Positions 13,062 to 63,710 of a stretch of 64,000 bases of DNA are shown here, piece after piece. Each line of letters begins with the position of its first letter. Position 1 is the first letter of the stretch. The stretch lies in the NCBI RefSeq assembly GCF_030028105.1, contig NC_092379.1, forward strand, positions 18,949,309 to 19,013,308, in the 5' to 3' direction. The notes under the pieces were generated by a model. The model was not told the DNA's origin. It saw nothing but the letters and a program-made list of their open reading frames with translations, and did not search any database. The position numbers and the translations under genes are program-made. This stretch comes from Mobula birostris. Taxonomy: Eukaryota.

Positions 13062-13212
13062 NNNNNNNNNNNNNNNNNNNNNNNNNNNNNNNNNNNNNNN
13101 NNNNNNNNNNNNNNNNNNNNNNNNNNNNNNNNNNNNNNNNNNNNNNNNNNNNNNNNNNNNNNNNNNNNNNNNNNNNNNNNNNNNNNNNNNNNNNNNNNNN
13201 NNNNNNNNNNNN
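13062..13212. other. Assembly gap (151 N)
   Basis: Run of n characters. Confidence 1.
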
Positions 13213-32695: not shown

Positions 32696-32806
32696 ATCAG
32701 TTCACTGACATAACTAAACCAGGGCTGCACCACGATTCAGTGCTGACCTTGAATTAATAGCACAATGTAAACAATTTCAATAATGGGGTGGGTCCCAGGA
32801 ACCTAC

Positions 32807-33124
32807 CTTGGACACTTTTCACTTGCTTCTTGATACTGCTGTTGGAGGGGGGATGAATCACTGTACAGCTGAAGACTGATTCTGACTTCCACTCCTGTAA
32901 ACTCACGGTCAGGAAGTGTCTGGCACTGAAAGTCCACCCCTGCTCCAGAGCGGTCGGTGTCGCGCTGGTGTTGGAGGTGATCACGGTGCTGTCTTTCTCC
33001 CAAGTGACAGTTATTTCATCCGGGTAGAATCCAGAGACCACACACTCCAGTGTGGCTGTTTTCCAATTCTTTGTCTCTTCCTGAGGTGGAGGCAGCAGTC
33101 TGACTTTGGGACTTTTTATCTCAA
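32807..33124 (-). CDS. IgW: IgW CH4 copy 5
   Basis: 318 nt, open, CCAG|TT...CAAG|GTAGGT. Confidence 0.93.
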
Positions 33125-33212
33125 CTGGAATAGACAAGTAAACAAAGGAAATGTGAAACATTTTGACTCAGGTAACTAATGCTGGCCATTTAATTGCTGG
33201 TCTCTTGCCCAC

Positions 33213-33515
33213 CTTTAGTACTATTGGTGCGTGCTGACACTGGGGAAGATGAAGGAGATTCCTGAGCGGAGCACTCATACTCCACCCCACTGAACCACTC
33301 CTCCACACTGATCTGGAATTCACTGAGCACTCTGTATCGGGACCCGTCCATCTCCACTGGGTGGGTGTGAATTCCTTTAGTTTTCTCCTTCCCGCCCACG
33401 TGCCAAGAGATGTGGATATCTTCGGGATCTGTACAGATAACTGTGCACTTCAGGGTAGCAGTCTCGTCGATCCACATCTCTTCAATGTCGGGATTTTGAA
33501 TAAATACAGACAGTT
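33213..33515 (-). CDS. IgW: IgW CH3 copy 5
   Basis: 303 nt, open, CACAG|AA...AAAG|GTGGGC; 88-nt intron to CH4. Confidence 0.93.
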
Positions 33516-33599
33516 CTGTGGGTTAGAAATGGAAATGCTCAGAATCGTACTGGAGATATTTCCATTGGTTGTGTTAGGTCCAGGCAGATCATCAGTACT

Positions 33600-36500: not shown

Positions 36501-37970
36501 AAGTGCAGGAGGAAGGGAACCAAATGGAGATGATGGGCAGGTGAGAAGTGTAGGGATGAGGGTGTATCTAGTATGGGGAATAGAACAAAAGGGAGAATAA
36601 AAGAGTTGGGGGGGGGTGTTACTGGAAGTTGCAGAAATCTGTATTCGTGCCATCAGGTAGGCAGGTATCTGGATGGAATATGAGGTCCTGACTTTGGCCT
36701 CCCCCTGGCAGTAGAGAAGGAAATGGACAGACATGTCAGAATGGGAATGGGAAGTCAAATTGAAATAGCAGGACACAAGGATATTGAAAAGTCAAATTGA
36801 AATGTGGAGGGGAGAGGTAGTCATTTTAAATAACGTATTTTCATCACTGTCTGTGAAACTTCCATCCCAATGGATACCAGAGACAGGTCTGGAATCCAGT
36901 AAGTGGATTGTAAAAGAATTCATTGATGAATTGTACACAGCCAATCACCTTATTTCACACTTTCCTGCTGAACAATGATACTGTTGGGTAGAACCATCGG
37001 AGAATGTTGCATTGAGATTACTCTGGTAAAAGAACATTGGCACAGGCTCCGAAAAACAGCTGGGACATTTTCTCACCATGTCAGCAGAGGAGGCCATGGA
37101 CAGACATGTCAGAATGGGACTGGGAAGCCAAATTGAAATAGATGGCCATGAGGATATTGGAAAGTCAAATTGAATTTTGGAGGGGAGAGACAGTTTAAAT
37201 CACGCGTTTTCTTCTCTAGCAAACGTCCATTCCAAAGGATTCCAGCGGCAGGTCTGGAACCCTGTAAATGGATTGTAAGGAAATTCATTGATGAATTTTA
37301 TAGAGAACCAATCACTTTATTTCACACTTTCCCGCCGAACAATGGTACTGTCGGGTAGAACCATCTGAGAATGTGGCATTGAGATTACTCTGGTAAAAGA
37401 ACATTGGCGCACTCTCTGAAAAACAGCGGGGACAGTTTCCACCTGGAAATAGAAAATTCATTAATGTCAGCATTAAATATTTTCACCTCTTTTCCTGTGC
37501 TTGGAAAAAAGAGAGCCCCACATATTCCCACTCTCTATTCTCTGTATTGCATCCTATTGGGATGAGGTTATGTCAGCCATGATAAATGAATATGCTCTCT
37601 GAACCTGGCTGAGGATCTGAGGACACAAGATCACAATATTTACTTGAGGATTGGGCATCAATTCAAAAATAATCCAGGCACCTACATTACAGTGAGTGGA
37701 CAATCGACAGAAGAGTCTCTCAGGAAACACTGGAAACAAGACTCTGGAGAGTGAAACAAATACAAAATTGCAATGATATGTTTTTGAGGAACTGACACTG
37801 AAGAGACAGTGAAAAGGGAAAGTGGAGATTTTCTCCAGATGGTAAAGCATGGGCGTGAGCTTTGCGCACTAACTTATTTTCATTATAACTGGAGAGACAA
37901 CTAAAATTATTGAGACAGAATGGGCAGGTGACCTAATCTTACAACTTTTCTGCCCAGTAGATGGGGTTAA
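33600..37970. repeat. Duplicate of the CH2-CH3 intron (paralogue at about 48330-51608)
   Basis: Collinear high similarity over about 3.3-4.4 kb. Differences include a 622-bp indel (34520-35141) and a roughly 370-bp local tandem duplication (about 36720-37440). Confidence 0.9.
35155..35311 (-). other. Candidate interspersed secretory-tail exon (copy B)
   Basis: Acceptor TCTGCTCTTTCTTCAG; phase 1 gives DKDTDSQSH-stop. A second AG 21 nt downstream gives VSLKVSTVTQ...TCLKVTECVNGVHKVQRAAM-stop. ATTAAA at 34966-34971. Confidence 0.33.
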
Positions 37971-38462
37971 AACTTCTCGATGAGGCTTCACTCACCTCAG
38001 CACTGAACTGACTCTGCAGCTGCGGCCTGCAGCCATCGGCACTCACCTCAGCACTGAGCCTGGCTCCACGGCCGTGGCCTGCAGCCATCGGACTCCTGGA
38101 CCGGTTGCAGTGCTGAACTGGCAACGTGGCTGTGGATTTACTTCAGGGGACTCTGCGGTTCAGGTTCTGTGGATTGTTTTTTTGAATATTTTTATTGTTT
38201 GCACAATTTGTTCTTTTTTTTCACACATTGGATGTTTGACCCTGAATTCTAGTGTATTTCGTTGTTTTGTGGCTGCCTGCAAGAAGAGAATCTCAAGGTT
38301 GTGTATAGTGCACATACTTTGATAATAAATGTACTTTGTACTTTGAACTTTATCAGTTCACTCACATAACTAAACCAGAACTGCACCGTGATTTAGTGCT
38401 GACCTTAAATTAATTGCACAATGTAAACAATTTCAATAATGGGGTGAGTCCCAGGACCCTAC

Positions 38463-38780
38463 CTTGGACGTTCTCCACTTGCTTCTTGATACTGCTGTTG
38501 GAGGGGGGATGAGTCACTGTACAGCTGAAGACTGATTGTGACTTCCACTCCTGTAAACTCACGGTCAGGAAGTGTCTGGCACTGAAAGTCCACCCCTGCT
38601 CCAGAGCGGTTGGTGTCGCGCTGGTGTTGGAGGTGATCACGGTGCTGCCTTTCTCCCAAATGACATTTATTTGATCCGGGTAGAATCCAGAGACCACACA
38701 CTCCAGTGTGGCCGTTTTCCAATTTTTCATCTCTTCCTGAGCTGGAGGCAGCAGAGTGACCTTGGGACTTCTTATCATGA
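38463..38780 (-). CDS. IgW: IgW CH4 copy 4
   Basis: 318 nt, open, CCAG|TC...CAAG|GTAGGG. Confidence 0.93.
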
Positions 38781-38868
38781 CTGGAATAGAAAAGAAAACA
38801 AAGGAAATGTCAAACATTTTGACTCAGGTAACTAATGCTGGCCATTTAATCGCTGGTCTTTTACCCAC

Positions 38869-39171
38869 CTTTGGTACTATTGGTCCGTGCTGACACTCGG
38901 GAAGATGAAGGAGATTCCTGAGCAGAGCACTCGTACTCCACCCCACTGAACCACTCCTCCACGCTGATCTGGAGCTCACTGAGGACTCTGTATCGAGCTC
39001 CGTCCATCTGCGGTGGTTGTTCGACAATTCCTTTAGTTTTCTCCTTCCTGCCAACATGCCAAGAGATGTGGATATATTCTGGATCTGTACAGATAACTGT
39101 GCACTTCACGGTAGCGGTCTTGTGGATCCACATCTCTTCAATGTTGGGATTTTGAATAAAGACAGACAATT
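38869..39171 (-). CDS. IgW: IgW CH3 copy 4
   Basis: 303 nt, open, CACAG|AA...AAAG|GTGGGT. Confidence 0.93.
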
Positions 39172-39313
39172 CTGTGGATTAGAAATTGAAATGCTCAGAA
39201 TCTTACTGGAGATATTTCCATTGGTTGTGTTAGGTCCAGGCAGATCATCAGTACGTGACAGATGCATTTAATGCAAACAGGATAACATAAAAACCCAGGG
39301 CTGAATCACTTGG

Positions 39314-39530
39314 CAGTCTGCTGGTGATCATGTCTTCACCTCTGTTGCTGACTGGACCCAGAGTCCTCACCCCATCTTCTCTCTTCCTCTGTCCAGCTGC
39401 CAGGTGACACTGAATCCCTGTAAATCACTGTGAACCACCTCATACAGAATGGCTGTTGTCCTCTTCGTCCAGATCTCTTCAAATGAAGGTTTACTTAAAG
39501 TGACTGAGGGGTGGGTATGTGAACAGCCAT
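39314..39530 (-). pseudogene. Truncated CH5 pseudo-exon
   Basis: 5' two-thirds of CH5; canonical Cys changed to Tyr (TGT>TAT), 1-nt deletion leading to TGA, fused to pre-CH3 intron sequence. Confidence 0.88.
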
Positions 39531-39986
39531 CTGGGAGAAATTATTATTTCACCATTCCCCAATGGCTGAGTTTGTCACTGACAAGACCAGTATTTCCTGT
39601 TCATCTCTGTTCAACGATATGCCAGTCCCAAGAAGATGAGATGAGAATAATGTACATTGGTGAAGAAATGAATCTCCCCTGTTGAGCAGACAGGGTAAAC
39701 ACCCTGAGGGAAAGTAAATGAACAAGATTGACCATCACATTGTTTTTGCAGTTTCATGGTCGCTTAACTGTTACCGGACGCTTTTTAAAACAAATACAGA
39801 AAATACCCAGAATTTCAGTGTGTGTCTGTGGAATTGGAAATGGAGTAAATTTCATGTAAAAAATTCCACAAAATTCACTTCTTATTTCAAGTTTTAAGTA
39901 TGAGAAATATTTAGTTTTTGTTACAAATATTAAAATGCACTTTTTTTCTCCATTAGGTGTATCTAAAATTTGCTGCTGCTTTGTCA

Positions 39987-41931
39987 TCGGGCCAACTCAG
40001 AGCAAGACAGCACCATTGAAAACTATAACAGGCGAGACCATCAATGACAAAGGCAAGTAGATGGAGAGATGGGTGGAGCATTACTTTGAACTCTTCTCCA
40101 GAGAAAACAGCATTTCAGACAGCACGCTAGATGCTGTGGAATGCCTGCCTGTCATGGAGGAACTTGATGCATTGCCGACTGCCGAAGAGTTGAGTAAAGC
40201 CATCGACAGCCTGCCCACTGGGAAGGCACCAGGATTGGGTGGCATTTCACCAGAGGCCATCAAATGTGCAAAGGGTGTCCTGCTAAACCACCTGCATAAA
40301 CTACTGTGCCAGTGCTGGATAGAGGGAGCAGTGCCACAAGACATGGGAGACTGCAACGTTGTCACCATATATGGGAACAAAGGGGACAGAAGAGACTATA
40401 ACAACTTCAGGGGAATCTCCTTGCTGAGCACCGTTGGGAAGGTCTTCGCCCGTGTGGTCCTGAACAGACTGCAGAAAATAGCCAAAAGGGTATATCCCGA
40501 GTCTCAGTGCAGTTTCAAGTCAGAACGCTCCACAATCGACAGGATCTTCTCCCTTTGACAATAACAAGAGAAATTGCAGAGAGCAAAGACAAACACTCTA
40601 CGTCTCTTTCATTGACCTTACGAAGGCCTTCGACCTTGTGAGCAGAGACGGCCTGTTCAAAATCCTTGCCAGGATTGGTTGTACCCCGAGGCTCCTCAGG
40701 ATAGTTCAGTCATTCCACACAGACATGAAGAGCATTATTCAGTTTGACGGCTCTTCTTCGGAGGCCTTCAACATCCACAGCGGTGCGAAACAAGGCTGTG
40801 TGCTTGCCCCCACCCTGTTTGGCATCTTCTTCGTAGTCATGCTGAAGCACGCCTTTGGAACATCAACTGATGGTATCTACCTCCACACCAGATCGGACTG
40901 GAGGCTGTTCAGTCTGTCCCGGCTGAGGGCGAAAGCCAAGGTTCGTTAAGTACTCATCAGGGACATGTTGTTTGCAGACGACGTGGCACTGACAACACGC
41001 TCTGAAGAGCAATTGCAACGCCTCATGGACAGCTTCTCAAGAGCTGCCAGGATTTCAGCTTGACCATCAGCCTGAAGAAGACCAACATGTTGGGCCAAGG
41101 CGTTGAGCACCCCTTGCCATTACCATCAACAACTACGAGCTGGAGGTAGTTCACAAGTTTACATTTCTAGGCTCCACCATCACGGACAGTCTCTCCCTAG
41201 ACCCCGAGATCAACAGATGGATTGGACGAGCAGCCTCAACATTCACCAGGCTGACAAAGGGAGTCTGAAAGAACAGAAAGCTGATGACGCACACCAAGGT
41301 TGCAGTCTACAGGGCCTACATCCTCAGCACACTGCTTTACGGCAGTGAGACCTGGAGCCTCTACTACAGACAAAAGAGGCGTCTCAATGCTTTCCACCTT
41401 CGCAGCCTGAGATCCATCCTGGACATCAAGTGGACTGACCTAGTCACCAACAATTAGGTCCTGGCCCACGCCCAGATACCCAGCCTCTTCACCCTGCTAC
41501 AACAACGCTGTCTCCGCTGGCTGGGCCACGTACACCGCATGTCAGACGGGAGGATCCCGAAAGACCTGCTGTATGGGGAACTGGCCTCCGGCAAGAGAGC
41601 ACAAGGGTGACCCCATCTTCGTTTCAAAGATGTCTGCAAGAGAGACATGAAGTCACTGAACATGAACGTCGAGAGGTGGGAAATCTACGCAGAGGTCTAA
41701 AAAGAGGAGAGAGAAGCTGAGGCTTGCTGCTGAAGAAAAGTGCACTCGTCGGAAAAACAGCACCAAGACAATACTAGAGGACAGTGCCTTCAAGTGCAGT
41801 CGCTGCCGCTGAGACTGTCACTCCCGTGTGGGCCTCTACAGTCACAACAGACACTGCTCTACCAACACAGACTAAAGCAATACATTCCGGGCGCAGATCC
41901 AAGGTCTCGCGAGACTAACGGATGCCACCAA
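39987..41931 (+). mobile_element. 5'-truncated RTE-clade LINE with stops, inserted in module 3
   Basis: RT peptides (NFRGISLLSTVGK, KQGCVLAPTLF, LFADD). TSD TTGTCA at 39981-39986 and 41932-41937; empty site TTTGTCAGAATG in sister modules. Confidence 0.88.
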
Positions 41932-42764
41932 TTGTCAGGATGTTGTGTGTTCAAGCCGCCCTCCAGAGACGCATTGACCAGGCTGACTATTCCCACACAG
42001 GAGCAGAGGGAGAGCTACTCTGCTGGAAATTCAGTCACAACTGAGGCACTAATTGGAGGCTGGGATTATGTTCAAAGGTAGAGGGAGGGAGAATTTTGAA
42101 GACAAGTATCAGGAATCTCCAGAGTGCCTGTCAGTGAAATGATCCGGATTCCCCTCAAGTTATGAAAGTATTTTCCGGGATACAATTATTTCTTTGGTGA
42201 AAGTCTGGATTATGTTGGCTGAAAGTGGAAAACAAACCTAAGAGGGGATAATTTTATCACCTAAGCAGATTAAAAAGATGAAGACTTGACACCAAAAGTG
42301 AAGGCCGAACTGCCGTTCATCTTACTACTCTATGAGGCTTGACTCGCCTCAGCACTGAACTGACTCTGCGGCTGTGGCCTGCAGCCATCGGTCTCCTGGA
42401 CCGGTTGCAGTGCTGAACTGGCAACCTGGCTGTGGATTTACTTCAGGGGGCTCTGCGGTTCAGGTTCTGTCAATTGCTTTTTTGAATATTTTTATTGTTT
42501 GCACAATTTGTTCTTTTTTTTTCACACATTGGATGTTTGACCCTGAATTCTATTGTATTTCGTTGTTTTGTGGCTGCCTGCAAGAAGAGAATCTCAAGGT
42601 TGTATATGGTGCACAGACTTTGATAATAAATGTACTTTGTACTTTGAACTTTATCAGTTCACTCACATAACTAAACCAGAACTACACTGTGAATTTAGTG
42701 TTGACCTTGACTTCATAGCACAATGTAAACAATTTCAATAATGTGCTGAGTCCCAGGACCCTAC

Positions 42765-43082
42765 CTTGGATGTTTTTCACTTGCTTCTTGATACGAGTGT
42801 TGGAGGGGGGATGAGTCACTGTACAGCTGAAGACTGATTCTGTCTTCCATTCCTGTAAACTCACGGTCAGGAAGTGTCTGGCACTGAAAGTCCACCCCTG
42901 CTCCAGAGCGGTCGGTGTCGCGCTGGTATTGGAGGTGATCACGGTGCTGCCCTTCTCCCAGGTGACACTTATTTGGTCCGGGTAGAATGCAGAGACCACA
43001 CACTCCAGTGTGACCGTTTTCCTATTCTTGGTCTCTTCTTGAGGTGGAGGCAGCAGACTGACCTTGGGACCTTTTATCTCGA
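42765..43082 (-). CDS. IgW: IgW CH4 copy 3
   Basis: 318 nt, open, CCAG|TC...CAAG|GTAGGG. Confidence 0.93.
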
Positions 43083-43169
43083 CTGGAATAGACAAGAAAA
43101 GAAAGGAAATGTCAACATTTTTGCCCAGGTAACTAATGCTGGCCATTTAATCACTGGTCTCTTGCCCAC

Positions 43170-43472
43170 CTTTGGTAGTATTGGTCCGTGCTGACACTCG
43201 GGAAGATGAAGGAGATTCCTGAGCAGAGCACTCGTACTCCACCCCACTGAACCACTCCTCCACACTGATCTGGAGTTCACTGAGGACTCTGTATCGAATC
43301 CCGTCCGTCTGCGGTGGTTGTTCGAAAACACCTTTAGTTTTCTCCTTCCCGTCCACATGCCAAAAGATGTGGATATATTCTGGATCTGTACAGATAACTG
43401 TGCACTTCACGGTAGCAGACTTGTCGATCCACATCTCTTCAATGTCGGGATTTTGAATAAAGACAGACAATT
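43170..43472 (-). CDS. IgW: IgW CH3 copy 3
   Basis: 303 nt, open, CACAG|AA...AAAG|GTGGGC. Confidence 0.93.
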
Positions 43473-43614
43473 CTGTGGGTTAGAAATGGAAATGCTCAGA
43501 ATCTTACTGGAGATATTTCTATTGGTTGTGTTAGGTCCAGGCAGATCGTCAGTACGTGACAGATGCATTTAATGCAAACAGAATAACAGAAACACCCAGG
43601 GCTGAATCACTTGG

Positions 43615-43831
43615 CAGTCTGCTGGTGCTCATGTCTTCACCTCTGTTGCTGACTGGACCCAGAATCCTCACCCCATCCTCCCTCTTCCTCTGTCCAGCTG
43701 CCAGGTGACACTGAATCCCTGTAAATCACTGTGAACCACCTCATACAGAATGGCTGTTGTCCTCTTCGTCCAGATCTCTTCAAATGAAGGTTTACTTAAA
43801 GTGACTGAGGGGCAGGTATCTGAACAGCCAT
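43615..43831 (-). pseudogene. Truncated CH5 pseudo-exon
   Basis: Same lesions and same junction as 39314-39530. Confidence 0.88.
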
Positions 43832-45166
43832 CTGGGAGAAATTATTATTTCACCATTCCCCAATGGCTGAGTTTGTCACTGACAAGACCAGCATTTCCTG
43901 TTCATCTCTGGTCAACGATATGCCAGTCCCAAGAAGATGAGATGAGAATAATGTACATTGGTGAAGAAATGAATCTCCCCTATTGAGCAGACAGGGTAAA
44001 CACCCTGAGGGAAAGTAAATGAACAAGATTGACCATCACATTGTTTTTTCAGTTTCATGGTGACTTAACTGTTACCAGACACTTTTTAAAACGAATACAG
44101 AAAATAGCATTTCAGAGTGTGTCTGTGGAATTGGAAATGGAGCAAATTTTCACGGAAAAAAATTCCACAAAATACACTTCATATTTCAAATTTTAAGTAT
44201 GAGAAATATTTAGTTTTTGTCCTAAATAATAAAATGCACTCTTTTTGTCTATCAGGTGTAACTAACATTTGCTGCTGCTTTGTCAGAATGTAGTGTGTTC
44301 AATCCACCCTCCAGGGGCTTCTACACATTGTCCAGGCTGACTATTCCCACACAGGAGCAGAGGGAGAGCTGCTCTGCTGGAAATTCAGTCACAACTGAGG
44401 CACTGATTGGAGGCTGGGATTATGTTCAATGTCAGAGGGAGAGAACGTTTTGAAGACAAATATCAGGGATCTCCAGAGTGCCTGTCCAGTGAAATGATCC
44501 GGATTCCCCTTAAGTTAGGATAGTATTTTCTGGGATACAATTATTTCTATGGTGAAAGTCTGGATTACGTTGGCTGAAAGTAGAGAACAAACCCAAGACT
44601 GGCTGATTCTATCACCCAGCCAGATTAAAAAAGATGAAGACATTGACAAAAAAACATGAAGGCCGAACTGCTGCTCATCTCACTACTCTCTGAGACTTCA
44701 CTTGCCCCAGCACTGAACTGACTATGCAGCTGCGGACGCAGCCATCGGCACTCACCTCAGCACTGAGCCTGGCTCCACGGCCGTGGCCTGCAGCCATCGG
44801 TCTCCTGGACCGGTTGCAGTGCTGAACTGGCAACGTGGCTGTGGATTTACTTCAGGGGGCTCTGCGGTTCAGTTTCTGTGGATTGTTTGTTTGAATTTTT
44901 TTATTGTTTGCACAATTTGTTTTTTTCACACATTGGATGTTTGACTCTGAATTCTATTGTGTTTCTTTGTTTTGTGACTGCCTGCAAGAAGAGAATCTCA
45001 AGGTTGTATATGGTGCACATTCTTTGATAATAAATGTACTTTGTACCTTGAACTTTATCAGTTCACTCACAAAACTAAACCAGGGCTGTACCGTGATTTA
45101 TATTGACCTTGAATTCATATCACAATGTAAACAATTTCATGAATGGGCTGAGTTCCAGGACCCTAC

Positions 45167-45484
45167 CTTGGACATTCTTCACCTGCTTCTTGATACGAGT
45201 GTTGGAGGGGGGATGAATCACTGTACAGCTGAAGACTGATTCTGACTTCCACTCCTGTAAACTCACGGTCAGGAAGTGTCTGGACCTGAAAGTCCACCCC
45301 TGCTCCAGAGCGGTCGGTGTAGCCCTGGTGTTGGAGGTGATCACGGTGCTGCCTTTCTCCCAGATGACATTTATTTGGTCCGGGTAGAATCCGGAGACCA
45401 CACACTCCAGTGTGGCCGTTTTCCTATTCTTGGTCTCTTCCTGTGATGGAGGCAGCAGAGTGACCTTGGGACTTTTTATCTCGA
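45167..45484 (-). CDS. IgW: IgW CH4 copy 2
   Basis: 318 nt, open, GCCAG|TC...CAAG|GTAGGG. Confidence 0.93.
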
Positions 45485-45571
45485 CTGGCATAGACAAGAA
45501 AAGAAAGGAAATGTCAACATTTTTACCCAGGTCACGAATGCTGGCCACTTAACCGCTGGTCTCTTACCCAC

Positions 45572-45874
45572 CTTTGGTACTATTGGTGCGTGCTGACACT
45601 GGGGAAGATGAAGGAGATTCCTGAGCAGAGCACTCGTACTCCACCCCACTGAACCACTCCTCCACACTGATCTGGAGTTCGCTGAGCACTCTATATCGGG
45701 ACCCGTCCCTCTCCGCTTGATGGGTGTGAATTCCTTTAGTTTTCTCCTTCCCGCCCACGTGCCATGAGATGCGGATATTTTCGGGATCTGTACAGATAAC
45801 CGTGCACTTCAAGGTAGTGGTCTTGTGGATCCACATCTCTTCAATGTTGGGATTTTGAATAAAGACAGCCAATT
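45572..45874 (-). CDS. IgW: IgW CH3 copy 2
   Basis: 303 nt, open, AACAG|AA...AAAG|GTGGGT. Confidence 0.93.
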
Positions 45875-46014
45875 CTGTTGATTAGAAATTGAAATGCTCA
45901 GAATCTTACTGGAGATATTTCCATTGGGTGTGTTAGGTCCAGGCAGATCATCAGTACATGACAGCTGCATTTAATGCAAACAGAATAACAGAAACACCCA
46001 GGGCTGAATCGTTA

Positions 46015-46239
46015 GTCAGTCTGCTGGTGATCATGTCTTCACCTCTGTTGCTGACTGGATGAGCGTCCTCACCCCATCTTCCCTCTTCTTTCCGTCCATC
46101 TGCCCAGGTGACACTGAATCCCTGTAATTAATTCACTGTGAACCACTTCACACAGAATGGTCACTGTCCTCTTTGTCCAGATCTCTTCGAAGGGAGGTTT
46201 GCTTAAAATAACTGAGGGGTTTGGTATCTGAACAGTCAT
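46015..46239 (-). pseudogene. Truncated CH5 pseudo-exon
   Basis: CH5 5' part with a +1 frameshift near the start (GATACCAAACCCC versus intact GATACCCGCCCC) and further indels; truncated at the same point. Confidence 0.88.
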
Positions 46240-47541
46240 CTGGGAGAAATGGCTCAATTATTATTTCACCATTTCCCAATGGACAAGTTTGTCACTGACA
46301 AGATCAGCATTTGCTGTTCATTTCTGGCCAATGATCTGCCAGTCCCATCAAGACGAGATGAGACCAATCTACATTGGTGAAGAAAGGAATCTCCCCTATT
46401 GAGCAGACAGGGTAAACACCCTGAGCAAATGTAAATGAACAAGGTTGGCCCTTACATTGTTTTTGCAGTTACATGGTCACTTAAACTATTACCAGCCACT
46501 TATTAAAACAAATACAGGAAATACCCAGCATTTCAAAGTGTGTCTGTGGAACGGGAAATGGAGCCAAGTTTCACATGAATATCTTCCAGAAAATACACTT
46601 CATATTTCAAAAATAAGTATTAGAAATATTTAATTTTTGTCACAAATATTTAAATGCACCTTTTTCTCTTTTAGGTGTAACTAAAATTTGGTGCTGCTTT
46701 GTCAGAATGTTGTGTGTTCAGGCCGCCCTCCAGAGGCTTCTACACATTGTCCAGGCTGACTATTCCCACACAGGAGCAGAGGGAGAGCTGCTCTGCTGGA
46801 AATTCCGTCATGACTGAGGCACTGATCGGAGGCTGGAATATTGTTCAAAGACAGACTGTCCAGTAAAATGGTCTGGATTCTCTTCAAGTGATGAGCCATT
46901 TTCAGAGATGCAATTGTTTCTATGGTGAAGCTTCTGGATTATGTTGGTTGAGAGCAGAAAACAAACCAAAGATTGGCTGATTTTATTACTGAGCCAGATT
47001 AAAAAGATTAATGCGTTGAGGGTGAAGGTGAAGTAGGAACCAATATTCAGCTCACTTCTCGATGAGGCTTCACTCGCCTCAGCACGGAACTGACTCTGCG
47101 GCTGTGGTCTGCAGCCATCGGCACTCACCTCAGCACTGAGCCTGGCTCCACGGCCGTGGCCTGCAGCCATCGGTCTCCTGGACCCGTTGCAGTGCTGAAC
47201 TGGCAACGTGGCTGTGGATTTACTTCAGGGGGCTCTGCGGTTCAGGTTCTGTAGATTGTTTGTTTGCATTTTTTTTATTGTTTGCACAATTTGTTTTTTT
47301 CACACATTGGATGGTTGACTCTGAATTCTATTGTATTTCTTTGTTTTGTGACTGTCTGCAAGAAGAGAATCTCAAGGTTGTATATGGTGCACATACTTCG
47401 ATAACAAATGTACTTTGTACTCTGAACTTTAATAGTTCACTCACAAAACTAAACCAGAACTACACCATGATTTAGTGTTTACTTTGAATTCATAGCACAA
47501 TGTAAACAATTTGAATAATGGGATGCGTCCCAGGACCCTAC

Positions 47542-47859
47542 CTTGGACATTCTTCACTTGCTTCTTGATACGGGTGTTGGAGGGGGGATGAATCACTGTA
47601 CAGCTGAAGACTGATTCTGTCTTCCATTCCTGTAAACTCACGGTCAGGAAGTGTCTGGCATTGAAAGTCCACCCCTGCTCCAGAGCGGTCGGTGTAGCCC
47701 TGGTGTTGGAGGTGATCACAGTGTTGCCTTTCTCCCAGATGACATTTATTTGGTCCGGGTAGAATCCAAAGATCACACACTCCAGCGTGGCCGTTTTCCT
47801 ATTCTTGGTCTCTTCCTGTGATGGAGGCAGCAGAGTGACCTTGGGACTTTTTATCTCGA
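47542..47859 (-). CDS. IgW: IgW CH4 copy 1
   Basis: 318 nt, open, CCAG|TC...CAAG|GTAGGG; IgNAR C3-like (PTALEQ, HPPS). Confidence 0.93.
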
Positions 47860-47946
47860 CTGGAATAGACAAGAAAAGAAAGGAAATGTCAACATTTTTG
47901 CCCAGGTCACGAATGCTGGCCACTTAACCGCTGGTCTCTTACCCAC

Positions 47947-48249
47947 CTTTGGTACTATTGGTGCGTGCTGACACTCGGGAAGATGAAGGAGATTCCTGAG
48001 CAGAGCACTCGTATTCCACCCCACTGAACCACTCCTCCACACTGATCTGGAGTTCACTGAGCACTCTGCATCGGGACCCGTCCCGCTCCGCTTGATGGGT
48101 GTGAACCCCTTTAGTTTTCTCCTTCCCGTCCACATGCCACGAGATGTGGATATTTTCAGGATCTGTACAGATAACTGTGCACTTCACGGTAGCAGTCTTG
48201 TCGATCCACATCTCTTCAATATCGGGATTTTGAATAAAGACAGCCAATT
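47947..48249 (-). CDS. IgW: IgW CH3 copy 1
   Basis: 303 nt, open, CACAG|AA...AAAG|GTGGGT; IgNAR C2-like (EEMWIDKTAT, SVEEW.SGVEY.CSA). Confidence 0.93.
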
Positions 48250-49289
48250 CTGTGGATTAGAAATTGAAATGCTCAGAATCTTACTGGAGATATTTCCATT
48301 GGTTGTGTCAAGTCCAGGCAGATCATCAGTACAGGACAGCTGCATTTAATGCAAACAGGATAACAGAAACACCCGGGGCTGAGTCACGTGCCTCATATTC
48401 CTATAAGTTTGATTGAGACAAGAAATTCAGAACAAAGGATGTGCTAACGAGGTTTCGAATCCCTTTCTAATAACCGTACAAATCAGTTTACTGTGAGACA
48501 GAGCTGGGTGAGACAGAGAAGCATGCAGATTTCTCAGCAGAGACACAGCACAGTATATTCTTTGCTTGGAGACTCAGTGCCATTGATTAGTAACAGTGAA
48601 CACTGTGAATCAATGAGAATCCCTTTCTCCATCTGGGCTGAGCCTGGGATTCACTCAGTTTAATAACTTCACATCCCGACATTCCAGTCTCACTGTGGCT
48701 GTGCCTCTCCTCATCTCTGCAACCTTCACCACCCACACAAACTTCAGACAACATCGTATCCTTTCAACTCTGCTCACTCATACACCTGCACTACTTCTGC
48801 TGGTGCCTGTGGTTTTAGCATTCTTGCTGACAAACACTGAAGCCTCTGTCTCACTTGAAATGAGCAGCCATGGTCAGAGTGTATCCATAAGTTAGGCACT
48901 GATGAACTGGCAAAGTGGGTTCAAATCCCAACCCGGTGGAAGGGAGTTTAAATTCAATTCAGAAACGTTTTTTGGAATAAAAAGAAGACTACGGAGGTAT
49001 TTGTAGTGTTATTCTCTGTGGTAATTTCTGGAGAGAAGTCTCATCTGGTCTGGCTGGTTTGTGACTCCAGACCTGCAGCAACACGGCTGGAGCTGAATCA
49101 CCATCAGGAATGAGGCAGCAAGTCCCTCAGTTCCAGAGAGATCAGTGATTGATGGGAAATGATAAATGAATAAAACAGCTCTTTGATCAACTGTTGGGTC
49201 ACCTGTCCTTTGGGTTAGAGTCAGTTTTGTGTGATTACACTCAAGTGAAGTTGTTGAGGTCATCTCCCAATGCACTATCGTCAGTTCAC

Positions 49290-52920: not shown

Positions 52921-53220
52921 GTTGAGGTTGAGGTTTCTGCCACTGCGATGTCACACTCCCTGCCTTGCAGGAGTAGACTTTATTCTTCTTCCAGTCTGCC
53001 GCAGAGATTTCGAGCAAGCTGCTCATCGTGTACTTTGAATTTTTCCCCAACACTGCTGGGTATTTCTTGATTCCAGTGGTGATGACCCCACTGTTAGTGG
53101 ACCATGTCTGACTGATGCTCTCAGGCTGATAGTCCTTGACCAGACAGAGGAGGCTGATCTTTTGGTCAGATTCTGTGTTGCAGGAAGGAGTGATGTAGAC
53201 TGATGGTGCGGACTTGACCT
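52921..53220 (-). CDS. IgW: IgW CH1 exon
   Basis: 300 nt, TTTCAG|AG...CAAC|GTTAGT; [40 protein letters not shown]...VYSCKAG, with a probable light-chain-linking Cys. This frame is missed by the ORF track. Confidence 0.93.
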
Positions 53221-56200
53221 CTGAAATGGAAAGAAATTCACAGATGGTTCTCTGAATAAATGCATTACTGGTAGAGAAAGGAGATGTTATATAAAGCAGT
53301 AATTTTCAAAATTATTCACCCGATTGTACAAAGCCGATATCACTTTTAACACTCAGCTGTGAGTCTGTGTCGCTGAGGTAGGAGGGTGTGGATCAATCCC
53401 ACAGTGGCAACTTGGACTCACAATCCAGGCCAACACTTCAGTGCAGGACTGAGGCAGTGACCCAATGTCCGATTGGTCGGATTTCAGTCAAAATACCAAA
53501 GTGACAATCTGTCTCTCATCCAAATACAATTCCTGATTCTGAGAAGTCTGTTAGCACTTGATCAATGAAGTTTACAAAAAAAGTAAGATTTAGAAGTATC
53601 TTATGGAATAATTCTGATGTGCTCAGTGTTGCTGTTGATGAGAGGAGTGATTGGTGTGGATATAGTGGTACCCAGTCTCCAGCACCATGTGTGCAATATA
53701 GTGGAGGTTGGGAAATGGACTCTGCTTCCGAAATTCAACTCAACAGACTACATGATGCAGCTGACGCTGCCTCACATATTTACCGTGTGTGACTGAGCAA
53801 GAATTACAACCCCACTGAGTCTGTGGAAACTTCTGGCTAACCGGGAGACAATGGTAACTTGCATCAGAAAGGACAGAGGAACTGTGGAAATACATTAGCC
53901 CAGACTCTGTGGAGAAGTGTTGGCCAACACAACCGACAGTGACTATGAGATTCCTGGGCAGATGCAGAAATCTCAAAATGTCATTAGATGTAGGTGATAT
54001 TCTCAGTGAAAAACCAGCCCAGAGAGTCCAGTGAGGAAATGCAGGTTGTGGCAATTCCCAAACACTTAACATGCAAAATACACTTGAAAGCACTGGTTCC
54101 TAATTCATTTCACTAGAAAAGGAGAAGTGTTGACTTACCACGGTAAGTAAAAGTGTGAAGATCAATTAACTAATTGACTAATTGACAGCTTTGAGAGGTG
54201 GATATGTTGAGGGGATGTGGTTTGACCAGTTGTCAGAATTACCTTGAACAGTGTTGTGTCATGATTGACACTGTCAATGACAGATTGTTACTGGTGGATG
54301 AGGTTAAAATCACCCAAAAAGACTGTGTGGACACAGCAGAACATGCAGGAACTCTGGGAGTAGGAGACTAGTGGGAGAGTATGTGTCAGACAGTGTGAAT
54401 TGCAGTAGATGAGGGCTTTGTTATCCAACAGTAAGATGGTCAACAGACACACACACAGGTTTCAGATTGATTCTGGTATCCGCAGGGCAGCAAACTCAAC
54501 ATTTGGAGTGGAAGTGGAGTGGTGGGAAGGTCACAATTTCAATCAGGAGCAAAATAATGAAATTTTCACCTCACAGTCATCACTCTGGGATGAAGGGCAT
54601 AAAATATTGAAATCTGGGTTTCAAACAGAATAAATATAAATCAATAAATATAACAAGTAAATAGGAATCGATATAATGTAACTGGTCAGTAATAACAGCT
54701 GCATTGTTTCGAACCATTTCCAGGTGACACTGGGGACTGTGAACTCAGAACATTTGCCTTCCTGAGCAAACACAGGTGATTCAGGTTGACAGGACAGGCA
54801 GAGCAGAGAAATGGTCCCTTTCTCATTCCTTTCAGACTGAGCCTGAAACAACCAGTGAAATGCTGACAACAGAATCCCCATCGAGGACACAACTTCTGTC
54901 AAACAGTGGGGCAAGCTGACCTGAACTGTGGGTGAAGTGTCACAGGAGAGAAAGCACAGGGCACGGTGCCAACTGGCCCATGTCCACACAGACCGGGCTG
55001 AATGGTGCTGGTTCAAACCCGCTGGGACTCTCCCCACACTCCTACACAGGGAAAGCTGCAACCTTACTGGGCCTCTGGATTCTGAAGACTTGGGGTGAGA
55101 TGTATCGAGGCCTCAGCATCAAGTAGCCTCAGACACAAAGTAAACCTGGGGTGGAGGCTGTCTTGTGTCAAAGCTGTCATGTAATTAACAGGTTTTAAAC
55201 GTCTTGGAGACATTGAGGTAAATTTCTGTAGAACAGATAATTTCTTTTGTTTAAAATAATAAATCTATATGACATTTAAAGCACAGAAATAACTCGTAAC
55301 TAATTACTTTCCCGACACACCCAGCTGAGAATCCTCAGTTATTTGAATGGGAGCTGTGATCTTTGCCAGGTCCGGCCTGTGAGGGAATTGTTGAGGTGGA
55401 TTTCCCAGTGTTACCCTGGGGAGTCCAACAGGGTCTAGTACCATGTGTTAGAGTGTGGTAACAGCTCTGGAGGTATCCATCACTCAGTAAATCCTGGGGT
55501 ACAGTGGTCTGTGGAACTGTGAGACTGACTCCAGGGTACGTGGCTGAACACTGGTGTTTCCCTTTGGAATTGCCAGCCACAGCCAGCACCATTTCACCCA
55601 CACTATCCTCAGCCTCCCAGGTACACAGCAGCTCAGGAACGGGCTGGTCAGCTGAGGTCTGAGGACCCTCATTGCTCTTTATCGACGTTAATCCCTGAAA
55701 ACAACGGAATTGCTAGATCAAAGACCTGGGACCATTTGGACGACCTACAACCAAATAGTGTCTGTCTATTCATCAACTGCACAATCAGGATTCAGATGAG
55801 GAGTTCCCAGTGGTGGGGAGCTTTAGGAATTGTAGGCTAAAAGTGACCATTCCCTTCCAACATCAACCAGACTAGATTGTCATGTTGTAGTTCAGTTTGT
55901 GGGAACAAGATGCAGACAAGTTGGATGTTTAGTCCCGCATATGAAGTGACACACTGCAGAAGTACTTGCTGGGTTCAGAAAGGCTCTGGGATGTTCTGGG
56001 GTTACAGAAGTCAAAGAAAAACACTTGTTTTCATCAAATTAAATTCAGTAAAATAAAACCTGAAACAGCGTAGTTGCCAGAAATCAGACTGACAGGGTCT
56101 GGTGAAAGGTCACTGATGTGAAACATTAACTCTGTTTCTCACCCACAGATGTTCCCTGAGCTGCTCAGTGTCGGCAGTGCAGGAGGCACAATAATGTCAG

Positions 56201-58787: not shown

Positions 58788-58835
58788 CTGAAGTCACTGT
58801 CAGCGAGGTTCCTCCGCCCCAGTAGGCAAGATAGT
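58788..58835 (-). CDS. IgW: JH segment
   Basis: YLAYWGGGTSLTVTS with donor CAG|GTAAGA. Confidence 0.95.
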
Positions 58836-58874
58836 CACAGTGCTCCGTCTCCCCATTCACCCAGTGCAGTAATT
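58836..58874 (+). promoter_or_regulatory. JH recombination signal sequence (23-bp spacer)
   Basis: Perfect CACAGTG abutting J, a 23-nt spacer, then a degenerate nonamer GCAGTAATT (4/9 match). Confidence 0.75.
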
Positions 58875-59207
58875 TCACTTGCCCGTCACATCCAATAATC
58901 TCAGCAAAATGTCAACATGATCCCTGTCCGGACCGGGAGCAGCCGCTTCCTGGATTTCCATCCCAAACTCCGTCCTTGCCTCTTGTTGGTGTGTGAATAA
59001 AGGCATTTTTTACAATTTTCCCGTCAGTGGACGACGGCTCCCGCCATCTCCCGGAATCAGAGTCGAATCCTTTTGGGCTTTTAATTGTCCAGAAATGGGC
59101 ATTTGCGCCCAGCAGTCCGAGTGAGGCTTCAGGGATTTGACTCTGGGAAGCAGCAATGCGGAATCCGTGGAGACAGACTGCGCGCCAGACGCTCCTTTGT
59201 CGGGACC

Positions 59208-59235
59208 AGTTTCTGTTCAGCTCCCCATCAGCGTG
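59208..59235 (-). promoter_or_regulatory. 12-bp-spacer RSS 3' of the V(D) unit
   Basis: CACGCTG + ATGGGGAGCTGA (12 nt) + ACAGAAACT (7/9 match to ACAAAAACC). Confidence 0.8.
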
Positions 59236-59539
59236 GTCCCATGTCTCGCACAGTAATAGGTGGCCGTGTCGTCCAGTCTCAGGTTGTTCATTTGCAGATA
59301 GACGGTGCTGCTGCCCTTGAAAACTTCGAATCGGCTCTGGACTCCAGTCGCGTAGTTTTTGCTACCACCACCCCATACAACGGCCAGCCACTCCAGCCCT
59401 TTCCCGGAGACCTGTTTCACCCAGTGGATGCCATAGCTGCTCATATCGAACCCACTGACCGCACAGGTCAGTCTGTGGGACTGTCCGGGCTTTACCACCG
59501 CTGACTCGGGCTGTGTCAGCACGACGGCGGACCGCACGC
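59236..59539 (-). CDS. IgW: VH exon with fused D-like remnant
   Basis: TTTTTTATTGACAG|GC; VVLTQPES...LTCAVSGF...HWVKQVSGKGLEWLA...DTATYYCAR followed by CATGGGAC. Intact conventional VH with C, W and YYC hallmarks. Confidence 0.95.
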
Positions 59540-59647: not shown

Positions 59648-59693
59648 CTGCCAGACAAGACAGGAGGAGACAGAGATAAGGAACGACCCCCAT
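59648..59693 (-). CDS. IgW: VH leader exon
   Basis: MGVVPYLCLLLSCLA(G), donor GCAG|GTGGGT, 108-nt intron. Confidence 0.93.
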
Positions 59694-60039: not shown

Positions 60040-63000
60040 GAGAGAGAGAGATTGAGACACAAGCTCCCGGTCTGGACATAAAGAGGGGGGAAGAGGGGAG
60101 AAATGTGGTAATTAGGGATAGTATAATCAGGGAAATAGACAGTTCCCTGTCGTGAGCGTCCCTTAGGCTGTGCTGCCCGCCTGATGCCCGAGTTTGGGAC
60201 ATCTTTATCTGACCTACAGAGGAATTTGCAGTGGAGAGAAAAGATCCAGTTGTTGTGGTCCATGTGGGTACCAAATACATAGATAGAACGAGGAAAGAGG
60301 TTCTGCGGAAGAATTTGAACAGTTTGGGACTAAATTAAAGGACAGAACTAAAAAGGTGGTAATCTCCGGATTACTACCTGAGCCATGTGCAAATTGGCAT
60401 AGGGTCAAGAAGAATGGAGAGTTAATGTGTAGCTCAAGGATTGGTGTGGAAGAAGTAGGTTTGAATTAATGGGAAATTGACAGCAGAATTGGGAAAGGAG
60501 GGAACTGTACCAATGGGATGGGCTCGACCTGAACCATGGTGCGACCTGGATCCCAGCAAGTCACATAATCAGGGCTGTGGATTGGGCTTTGACCTAAATA
60601 GTAGGGAGAGGGTGGGTTCAACAGATTGGAGAAGTATGGATAAAGTAAAAGAAAAAAAGTGTCGATAAAGATAAAGTAAAAGCAAAAGATAAAAAAGAGG
60701 AAAGTAAGAGTGGAGTGAAGAGAAGTCAGGTGCAAAAGAGAAAAAGATTACAAGATTTTAAAAACACAATGAGTGTAAGGTCACTTTATTTGAATGCCTG
60801 TAGTATTCGAAACAAGGTCGGTGAACTTGTGGCACAAATCACTACAAAAGGGTATGATTTAGTGGCCATTACAGAGGTTGCAGGGTGGAGAGGATTGGGA
60901 ATTAAATATCCAAGTATATCAAGTAATACGGAAAGATAGGCAGGAAGGTAAGGGAAGTGGAATATCCAAGTATATCAAGTAATACGGAAAGATAGGCAGG
61001 AAGGTAAGGGAAGTGGGATAGCACTCTTAATTAAAGATGAGATCGGGGCATTAGTGAGAGTTGATATAAGATCTAAGGAGCTGAATGTTGAACCCATCTG
61101 GGAGAGATTAGGAATAGTAAAGGGAAAAAATTACTGGAGTTGTCTATCGGCCAGTGAATAATAACATTACAGTGGCTTAGGCAATCTTATGTATCTGAGG
61201 TACATAAGAATGGAACAGCAGTTGTCATGGGGGACTTTAACTTGCACATCGATTGGGTAAATCAAGGTGGTCGAGGCAGTCTTGAGGAGGACTTCAGAGA
61301 ATACATCCATGATTGCTTTCTTGAACAGCATGTTACTGAACCTACAAGGGAACATGCTATCTTAGATACGGCCCTGTGCAATGAGACAGGTAAAATTAGT
61401 GATCTTGTTGTTAAGGATCCTCTTGGAAAAAGTGATCACAGTATGATTGAATTTTTCATACAAATGGAGGGTTCAGTAGTTCATCTGAAAACAGTGTATT
61501 ATGCCTGAACAATGGAGACTACAATGGGATGAAAGGAGATTTGGCTAGTGTAGATTGGGAACACAGGCTATATGATGGGATGGTTTAAGAACAGTGGGAG
61601 ACTTTCCAAGATATTTTTCACTTGCTCAACAGAAGTATATTCCAGTTAAAAGCAAGGACAGTAAGGGTCGGAAGAGCCAGGCTTGGATACTAAGGAAATA
61701 AAAGAAGGTATCAAACTAAAAGCTTGTTTGTACAGTCACCAAGAGTAGTGGGAACATGGAAGATTGGGAAAACTTAAAAAAGCAACAAACAACCACTAGG
61801 CAAGCAATAAAGAGAGGGAAGCTGGATTATGAAAATAAAATAGCACAAAATATAAAAAAAGGATAGTAAAAATGTTTTATAATTATATAAAGTGGAAAGG
61901 GGTGGCTAAAGTGAATGTAGATCCCTTGGAGGATGAGAAGGGGGAATTGATATTGGTTAATGAGGAAATGGCCGAGGCTTTAAATGACTATTCTGTGTTG
62001 GTCATCATGGTGGAGGACACGTTTAACCTGCCAAAGAGAGATGTTATGGATGCTATGGGAGGTGAAGACCTCGATACAATAACTATCACTGAAGAGGTAG
62101 TGCTGAGCAAACTTGTGGGCCTGAAGATAGATAAGTCCCCTGGTCCTGATGGAATGCATCCCAGGATACTGAAAGAAATGGCAGAAGCTACAGTAGAGGC
62201 TTTGGTGATAATTTGCCAAAATTCTGTGGACTCTAGGCAGGTCCCGGTGGAATGAAAGATGGCAAAAATCACATCACTGTTCAAAAAAGGATGTAGGCAA
62301 AAGGCAAGTAACTATAGGCCAGTTAGTTTAACATCTGTAGTTAGGAAAACGCTTGAAGCTATCATTAAAGAAGAATTGGCAAGGCACCTGGAAAGAAATG
62401 GATCCATCAGGCAGATGCAATATGGATTCAGCAAAGACGAGTCCTGTTTAACAAACTTACTGGAGTTCTTTTACGATATAGCCAGCAATATAGTAATAGA
62501 GGGGAGCAGATGGATGTTATTTACTTGGATTTACAGAAGGTGTTCGATAAGGTGCTGCATGAAAGAATAATTCATAAGATAGGGATGCATAGAGTGGGGG
62601 AGGGAGCGGTGATGTATTAGCATTGATAGAGGATTGGTTAAATAATAGAAAGCAGACAGTTGGGATACATGGGTGTTATTCTGGTTGGCAATCAGTGGTG
62701 AGCGTTGTGATGCAGGGGTCGGTCCACGATATACATTAACGATTTGGAAGAGGGGACCGAGTGTAGAGTACCTAAGTTTGCTGGTGGTACTAAATTGAGT
62801 GGAATAGCAAATTGTGCAGAAGATACGAAGAGTCTGCAGAGAGATATAGATAGTTTAAATGAATGGGCAAGGGTCTGGCAGATGGAGTACAATGTTGGTA
62901 GATGCGAGGTAATCCACTGTGGAAGAAAACATGGAAGATCAGATTTCTACTTAAATGGTAAAAAATTGCAGCACGCTGCTGTGCAGAGTGACTTGGGAGA

Positions 63001-63710
63001 GCTTGTACATGAATCGCAGAAGGTTGGTTTGCAGGTGCAGCAGGCTATTGAGAAGTTAAATGGAATGTTGGCCTTCATTGCTGGAGGGATTGAATTTAAG
63101 AGCAGGGAGGTTATGCTGTAACTGTACAGGGTACTGGTGAGGCTGCATCTGGAGGACTGTGAGCACTCTGGTCTCCTTACTTGAGGAAGCATATACTGGC
63201 TTTGGAGGTGGTGCAGAGGAGATTCACTAGGTTGATTCCAGAGGTGAGGGGATTAGACTATGAGGAGAGATTGAGTCACCTGGGATTTTACTTTCTGGAA
63301 TTCTAAGAATGAGAGGAGGTCTTAGAGAAACATATAACGTTATGAAAGGGATAGGTAAGAAAGAGACAGGAAAGTTGTTTCGACTGGTAGGTGAGACTAG
63401 AACTAGGGGACATAACCTCAGGATATGGGGGAAGTAGATTTAGGATGGAGATGAGGAGCAACTGCTTTTCCCAGACAGTAGTGAATCTGTGGAATTCTCT
63501 GCCCAATGAAGCAGTGGAGGCTACCTCAGTAAATATATTTAAGACAAAGTTGGATAGATTTTTGCATAGTAGGGGAATTAAGGGTTATGAGGAAAAAGCA
63601 CGTAGGTGGAGATGAGTTCATGGTCAGATCAGCCATGATCTTATTGAATGGTGGAGTATGCTCAATGGGCCAGATGGCCTATTCCTGCTCCTTATGTTTT
63701 TATGTTCTTA
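60040..63710 (+). mobile_element. Near full-length decayed CR1-like LINE
   Basis: ORF1 esterase-like region (VVVHVGT-like, VVISGLLP), endonuclease (LNACSIRNK, MGDFN, SDH), RT (KSPGPDGMHPRIL, YRPVSLTS) and 3' tail; many stops. Confidence 0.88.

Follow-up and report, generated by a model that had tools for sequence, protein, structure and literature searches.

An inherited VD join in an IgW-type immunoglobulin heavy-chain minilocus of the ray Mobula birostris

The heavy-chain variable (VH) exon in the stretch of Mobula birostris DNA analysed here (the window: 64,000 nt, positions 18,949,309 to 19,013,308 of contig NC_092379.1) runs directly into a short D-like remnant, which is followed by a recombination signal sequence (RSS) with a 12-nt spacer. 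Clusters with partial joins have been on record for elasmobranchs since the 1980s. The arrangement raises the question of whether the fusion of V and D is the work of the V(D)J recombinase in an ancestral germ line or came about by some other route, whether the join is inherited or belongs to the sequenced tissue, and what remains for such a gene to do. The gene lies on the minus strand; the preliminary description of this DNA gave it in the gene sense with the strand unstated. Its leader, V exon and joint comprise the following features.

59648..59693, minus strand: leader exon, ATG at 59693, then a GT donor
59244..59539, minus strand: V-derived portion of the VH exon, from FR1 to Cys-Ala-Arg, frame open
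59236..59243, minus strand: coding-joint remnant CATGGGAC, of which at minimum the 3′ GAC/GGAC comes from D2
59208..59235, minus strand: 12-RSS from the 3′ side of D2 (CACGCTG, spacer ATGGGGAGCTGA and nonamer ACAGAAACT)
59235-59229, minus strand: heptamer CACGCTG of this RSS
59228-59217, minus strand: its 12-nt spacer ATGGGGAGCTGA
59216-59208, minus strand: its nonamer ACAGAAACT, 7/9 against the consensus

The leader intron (108 nt, 59647-59540) is removed in contigs of the RNA runs X1 and X4 and is retained in the DNA runs. The VH exon matches the Pfam V-set domain (E=1.6e-13), and its top named matches in a protein search are immunoglobulin heavy variable genes. It encodes GFDMSSYGIH as CDR1 and VVWGGGSKNY as CDR2. 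Its terminal TGTGCGAGA occupies 59252-59244; homology with unjoined V genes stops at 59244, the V coding end, and the 8 nt CATGGGAC come next. The pattern CACNNTG-12-ACANAAAC has a single occurrence in the 64 kb window and none in 100 shuffles. The heptamer CACGCTG differs from the family form, CACGGTG, at position 5 and from the consensus at positions 4-5, and recombination at this non-consensus heptamer may be inefficient. At a 23-nt spacing past CACGCTG, the 9-mer matches the nonamer consensus at only two of nine positions (by eye). The layout is therefore as previously described, with V fused to a D-like remnant and a 12-RSS and no 23-spacer nonamer after V.

Downstream of the joint, the minilocus continues with four further features.

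58875..59207, minus strand: former D2-J interval, 333 nt, D-free
58836..58874, minus strand: J 23-RSS, with weak nonamer AATTACTGC, 23-nt spacer and heptamer CACTGTG
58788..58835, minus strand: JH segment YLAYWGGGTSLTVTS, then a GTAAGA donor
52931..53221, minus strand: CH1 exon of the same minilocus (C1-set, E=1.9e-17)

Scanning of the 333 nt between the 12-RSS and the J RSS revealed no CACNNTG on either strand, and heptamer and nonamer pairs there all scored 10/16 or less, in keeping with the earlier observation that no further heptamer precedes the J RSS. The heptamer of the J RSS (58842-58836) is perfect. Its nonamer matches at 4/9 at the 23-nt spacing and at 3/9 at 12; as it is poor at both, the designation of this signal as a 23-RSS leans partly on homology with paralogues, in which the J RSS is conserved upstream of J. 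The heptamer of the J 23-RSS proposed in the preliminary description thus stands, while the nonamer is weak (4/9) and the spacer class was assigned partly via paralogues. With the D2 12-RSS facing the J 23-RSS and no free D between them, a single VD-J join remains, as had been suggested.

CH1 homologues are located after the paralogous V-J units also. In the window, the other CH exons extend to about 30140, and the order of the constant region is CH1, CH2, five CH3-CH4 pairs, CH5 and CH6 with a tailpiece. This amounts to 14 CH exons ahead of the tailpiece/secretory end, and the constant region is as unusually long as first reported. At least six C1-set CH exon types and a secretory tailpiece occur in this one cluster, which by architecture points to a heavy-chain isotype of IgW type (omega/IgD-like). 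In a protein search, the CH6 exon matched only unnamed contig-derived proteins. The five CH3-CH4-like exon pairs are arranged in tandem between CH2 and CH5 (window 32757-48256, minus strand), and an additional CH3-CH4-like pair lies downstream of the tailpiece exon (24813-23990, minus strand). Open frames resembling fragments of retroelement endonucleases or reverse transcriptases (by eye), at 60649-63118 (plus strand), 40061-40946 (plus strand), 1283-2053 (minus strand) and elsewhere, surround and break up the minilocus. The window also contains an assembly gap of 151 N (13062-13212).

The origin of the joint can be read from relatives in the same genome. A search of this genome with the 921-nt V-to-J stretch of the window as query revealed a large heavy-chain region that spans about 18.4 to 24.3 Mb of the same contig. 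In at least six family members the V part (query 1-457) and the post-V part (462-921) lie ~860 bp apart; in the window and 18 other members the two parts adjoin. The unjoined clusters L022, L026, L028 and L030 have the organization V(23)-(12)D1(23)-(12)D2(12)-(23)J, the canonical elasmobranch layout. Their V genes end in GCGAGAGA, followed by CACAGTG-23-ACAAAAACC. D1 is ACTATACTGGGTGG, with a 12-RSS on its 5′ side and a 23-RSS on its 3′ side, and D2 is ATATGGAC, ATATGGAG or ACTATAACTATGGAC, with a 12-RSS on both 5′ and 3′ sides, the 3′ signal reading CACGGTG-ATGGGGAGCTGA-ACAGAAAC plus C or T. The spacer in the window is identical to that of this D2 3′ signal and the nonamer is identical or one base off; over the 386 nt from the spacer to the J heptamer, the window and the unjoined clusters are 92-93% identical.

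In the alignment, the window tracks V through AGA and then D2 from ATGGAC on, with about 2 nt trimmed from each coding end and one or two extra nucleotides at the joint. The ~860 bp that it lacks contain the V signal, D1 with both its signals and the D2 5′ signal. This absence indicates a V-D2 (possibly V-D1-D2) coding joint that has kept the D2 12-RSS, and since the V 23-RSS and the D2 5′ 12-RSS form a legal pair, one deletion is enough to produce it. A contig from a related species matches the window to 59239 and continues with ATAT and the unjoined D2 5′ 12-RSS. The alignment with unjoined clusters that had been proposed for tracing the D of origin leads to the 3′ end of D2, and the unjoined V genes end differently from the window (GCGAGAGA|CACAGTG, not CATGGGAC). 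Removal of the V-D interval, as earlier proposed, is confirmed: the unjoined relatives hold the ~860 bp, and the breakpoints fall at RSS borders.

The window junction is one of at least nine different VD(D) junctions among the clusters of this family, all of them at the same D2 12-RSS. The sister junctions, read from the end of the V exon, are as follows.

GCGAGAG-TATGGAC
GCGAGA-TATGG^GGTG, CAC of the heptamer deleted
GCGAGA-GGGTGGGAG, nine copies (L004, L011-L018)
GTGAGA-CAAAGTGAGGTGTTGGAG
ACGAAAGA-TGACAGCTGGGGTGGATATGGAG
ATAAGAGA-TCAGTCATGGAG
GCGA-TTTGGAG
GCGAAAGA-TGGAGGAACTCCGGTCTAC

Several clusters are of individual relevance.

G000:C12:21953574-21957493: L005, VD2-joined, the last two D2 bases and the heptamer CAC gone (TATGG^GGTG)
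G000:C12:18934959-18938753, ~13 kb before the window start: an example of class B (L004, L011-L018), with D1+D2 junction GGGTGGGAG
G000:C12:20955773-20959233: L029, V-DD-J, a V with 23-RSS and a germline D1D2 join ACTACAACTGGCTGGAG
C12:20116000-20119200 / 20249600-20253600: L031/L032, V-D1
G000:C12:21846886-21850346, minus strand: L027, inverted D1-D2 interval

In L005, V and CH1 are intact and a usable signal is absent, so that its VD is unable to join J. The class-B clusters L004 and L011-L018 constitute a pseudogene class that has been duplicated; within a repeat unit of ~71 kb they alternate with the cluster of the window type. The V of L011-L018 lacks one base in FR1 and is frameshifted, and in these clusters homology with the window ends before J; class-B CH1, where found, is split and has an in-frame stop. 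In L031 and L032, V is fused to a long stretch that includes D1 and terminates at the D1 23-RSS, and partial V copies lie nearby. L027 has a V-D1 unit and then the D1-D2 interval reversed (404 nt, 94.8% identical on the opposite strand). Where the D1 23-RSS meets the D2 3′ 12-RSS, at the end of the interval, there is a perfect heptamer-to-heptamer signal joint (C12:21847915-21848015), which is unique in the genome, and the former D2 5′ 12-RSS is now oriented towards J. L027 is a direct footprint of the recombinase within the same gene family.

These clusters bear on whether the V-D interval was instead lost through an ordinary deletion independent of RAG, or whether the joined form is ancestral and the others were split by insertion. 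Either course is extremely improbable. Both breakpoints in the window lie no more than about 2 nt from heptamer borders, the sister clusters have varied trimmed and added junctions that every time end at the same RSS, and the perfect signal joint of L027 places the recombinase on this V family in inherited DNA. In the work of Lee et al., moreover, split genes proved to lack target-site duplications (PMC2193153, PMC2193156).

Of some 14 clusters in which an IgW-type CH1 is intact, about 10 are VD(D)-joined and two unjoined; these CH1 cluster counts are a lower bound, as the search scores best candidates only. A second V family, about 80% identical and located at 23.8-24.3 Mb, has no matching CH1 and so belongs to a different isotype. 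Joined clusters are mixed in with unjoined ones in the trees built from the V and from the D2-J interval. As gene conversion is likely, independent events were counted from the junction sequences, not from the trees. It is tentatively proposed, as a possibility still short of an expectation, that the IgW locus has largely shifted to one-step VD-to-J rearrangement via many independent germline recombinase events.

Two further copies of the window cluster lie 650-820 kb away on the same contig. One (L001) is identical to the window copy across 3921 nt; the other (L003) differs by two SNPs, one of them in the junction codon (AGA -> GGA), with the joint unchanged. Each copy has a class-B pseudogene cluster about 71 kb off on the same side, which indicates segmental duplication after the join. 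The join is also older than the duplications, since three copies share it and one of them has two private SNPs. A junction-specific 64-mer was represented by 4/4 sampled 31-mers in four DNA runs of sample S2, the probable source of the assembly. All 4/4 junction words were also found in RNA runs X1 (sample S1) and X4 (sample S3); S1 and S3 may be tissues from a single animal. The same words, only four being sampled, were absent from the related-species runs.

It could be argued that the assembly captured a somatic rearrangement of the sequenced tissue, as the DNA runs with the junction come from the probable source sample (S2). This is a most improbable explanation. The identical joint is present in three copies separated by 650-820 kb, one of which carries SNPs of its own; the same architecture recurs in paralogues that have diverged by about 9%; and the junction and RSS occur in RNA from two other samples. 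A polyclonal B-cell population, moreover, cannot yield a consensus joint. The possibility of somatic rearrangement, raised in the preliminary description as a reason for doubt, is answered by the occurrence of the junction in three paralogous copies and three samples, which is not the signature of a somatic clone. The VD join is inherited: it predates gene duplication and extends beyond one cell clone.

The D content of the remnant is less straightforward. Its 3′ GAC, and probably GGAC, is from D2, and the additional G in ATGGGAC makes the source of the 5′ part ambiguous. From comparison of the sequences, the 5′ part is on balance best read as one untemplated C followed by ATGG(+G)AC of D2. 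Another cluster, L006, shares the derived heptamer CACGCTG and reads GCGAGAG-TATGGAC, with a D2 that appears untrimmed directly after V; this junction and heptamer support a direct V-D2 join. The less probable alternative is a two-step V-D1-D2 join, composed of CA, TGG from the 3′ end of D1 and GAC from the 3′ end of D2, which may represent a common event with class B and its junction GGGTGGGAG. TGG+GAC gives TGGGAC exactly, with no inserted G to be invoked, class B comes out as the sister of the window copy in trees of V and of the D2-J interval alike, and the class-B junction is clearly D1 (GGGTGG) plus D2 (GAG). Against this, L006 has TATGGAC right after V together with the derived CACGCTG of the window; three or four changes are required between the class-B and window junctions; and the trees are FastTree topologies taken without support values, for clusters in which gene conversion is likely.

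The preliminary description had also read the palindrome CA|TG as a P addition. P nucleotides are palindromic and must abut an untrimmed coding end. Germline D ends start ACTA or ATAT and V ends GAGA or GAGT, and no untrimmed coding end adjoins the palindrome. The TG is internal D-derived sequence (ATGGAC of D2, or TGG of D1), and a 4-mer is palindromic by chance in 1 of 16 cases. The P-nucleotide reading was rejected.

The window cluster is very probably an inherited, partly pre-assembled heavy-chain minilocus (VD-J-C) that arose through an ancestral germ-line V(D)J recombinase join. In an ancestral germ line, cleavage by the recombinase would have occurred at the 23-RSS of V and at the 5′ 12-RSS of a D. 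The simplest partner would be the D2 5′ 12-RSS, for which the 12/23 rule is satisfied, the alternative being two steps via D1. Each coding end would have lost some two bases, untemplated bases (one or two) would have been inserted, and the join would have removed the ~860 bp with the V RSS, D1 and its signals and the D2 5′ signal. As a result, the V exon now continues into the D remnant and terminates at the D2 3′ 12-RSS, which faces the J 23-RSS 333 bp downstream. The joined cluster was duplicated at least twice afterwards. We infer that RAG acted in germ cells.

Can the window copy still be used? RNA contigs with zero mismatches cover 58949-59107 within the VD-J interval, and the unrearranged configuration is thus transcribed. 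Runs X1 and X4 are also very rich in V-to-J joints, in which 30-40 diverse letters separate V from J; these joints, mapped in assembled contigs rather than raw reads, anchor in family-wide FR3 and J sequence and represent the whole V family. At window position 58826 (J codon GCC), ~95% of the X1/X4 J depth has T for G, giving GAC (Asp) in the gene sense, which indicates that most expressed J segments come from other clusters. A protein search with the V exon through CARHG returned only distant VH genes (48-57% identity) and no transcripts of the window V. Octamer and TATA motifs are absent within ~500 nt upstream of the leader. Comparison of the V exon with seven paralogues gives dN/dS values of 0.6-1.6, which are uninformative for a V gene. 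If VD directly abutted J the product would be out of frame, as in most germline pairs, and productive joints therefore require trimming or added bases.

In B cells, one deletional VD-to-J join would finish the gene. Its CDR3 would begin with germline-encoded Cys-Ala-Arg-His-Gly and would be diversified at a single junction; it may also be short, as the preliminary description predicted. A functional one-step gene of this kind is the likely status of the window copy. It is rather unlikely that the cluster is instead an evolutionary relic that no longer rearranges and is in practice a transcribed pseudogene. Such a relic would be in keeping with the non-consensus heptamer CACGCTG, with the transcripts tied to the window copy, which represent the unrearranged configuration only, and with the many dead sisters: L011-L018 have a frameshifted V, L005 has a heptamer deletion, and CH1 with in-frame stops is found in the L011-L018 class and also downstream of L022, L028 and L032. 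In the window copy, however, leader and splice sites are intact, as are the V frame, J and CH1, the heptamer CAC and a 7/9 nonamer are retained, and three copies have been maintained.

On every defining feature that can be tested, the window cluster fits the partly germline-joined elasmobranch VD-J kind. Partly germline-joined (VD-J, VDD-J) IgM heavy-chain clusters were reportedly described in horned shark and skates by Kokubu in 1988 and Harding in 1990. The window shares with these the minilocus organization, the inherited V-D fusion, the last D 12-RSS facing a J 23-RSS and derivation from V(23)-(12)D1(23)-(12)D2(12)-(23)J; it differs in its constant region, which is of IgW type with many CH exons, and in its host, a ray. 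The nurse shark IgW (omega) miniloci are similar in having V-D-J and six to eight CH exons per cluster and multiple secreted isoforms. Zhang, Du Pasquier and Hsu reportedly found in 2013 that all of the eight nurse shark IgW clusters are capable of full rearrangement, whereas most clusters with an intact IgW-type CH1 in the genome of the window are VD(D)-joined.

Elasmobranch clusters can be partly (VD-J) or fully germline-joined through RAG activity in germ cells, and the joined genes are favoured early in life (PMC4279169, PMC5192425). In these reviews, joined heavy-chain clusters are covered as IgM or in general terms, with IgW not singled out. Nurse shark light chains have been germline-joined recently and repeatedly (Lee et al., 2000; PMC2193156). 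The nurse shark NS4 VJ light-chain genes resemble the window in having been joined from a split form, in a RAG-like manner in germ cells, in several independent events and with trimming. They are, however, complete VJ joins, some with credible P regions, whereas the window has a partial VD join that keeps a live RSS and has no credible P region. An inversion between D segments has been reported in the germline of the horned shark (Lewis and Wu, 2000; PMC2193153). Like L027, which lies outside the window, this Heterodontus D1-D2 inversion reflects recombinase acting between D signals in inherited DNA; it was explained by a hybrid-joint model (PMC2193153), whereas L027 has a standard inversional coding joint and a perfect signal joint, not a hybrid joint.

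The VD join of the window is therefore a real further instance of a peculiarity already familiar from sharks and rays, and leaves the principle unchanged. Germline-joined antibody genes show inherited DNA to be a possible substrate of the V(D)J recombinase, and they yield receptors with pre-set parts of the binding site, which in sharks are favoured early in life. The window copy is a cleanly documented IgW-type example in a ray. Since the split ancestor form occurs in one genome together with several sister joints and a signal joint that has been retained, the family offers a convenient series for dating the joins and for asking whether pre-joined IgW genes are used, and the variety of joins across the locus is a more interesting lead than the single copy. 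If the locus has indeed largely shifted to one-step rearrangement, this would imply recurrent, perhaps ongoing, RAG activity in the germ line, germline-encoded CDR3 starts under selection, and a natural series of V(D)J events in the germ line that could be dated.
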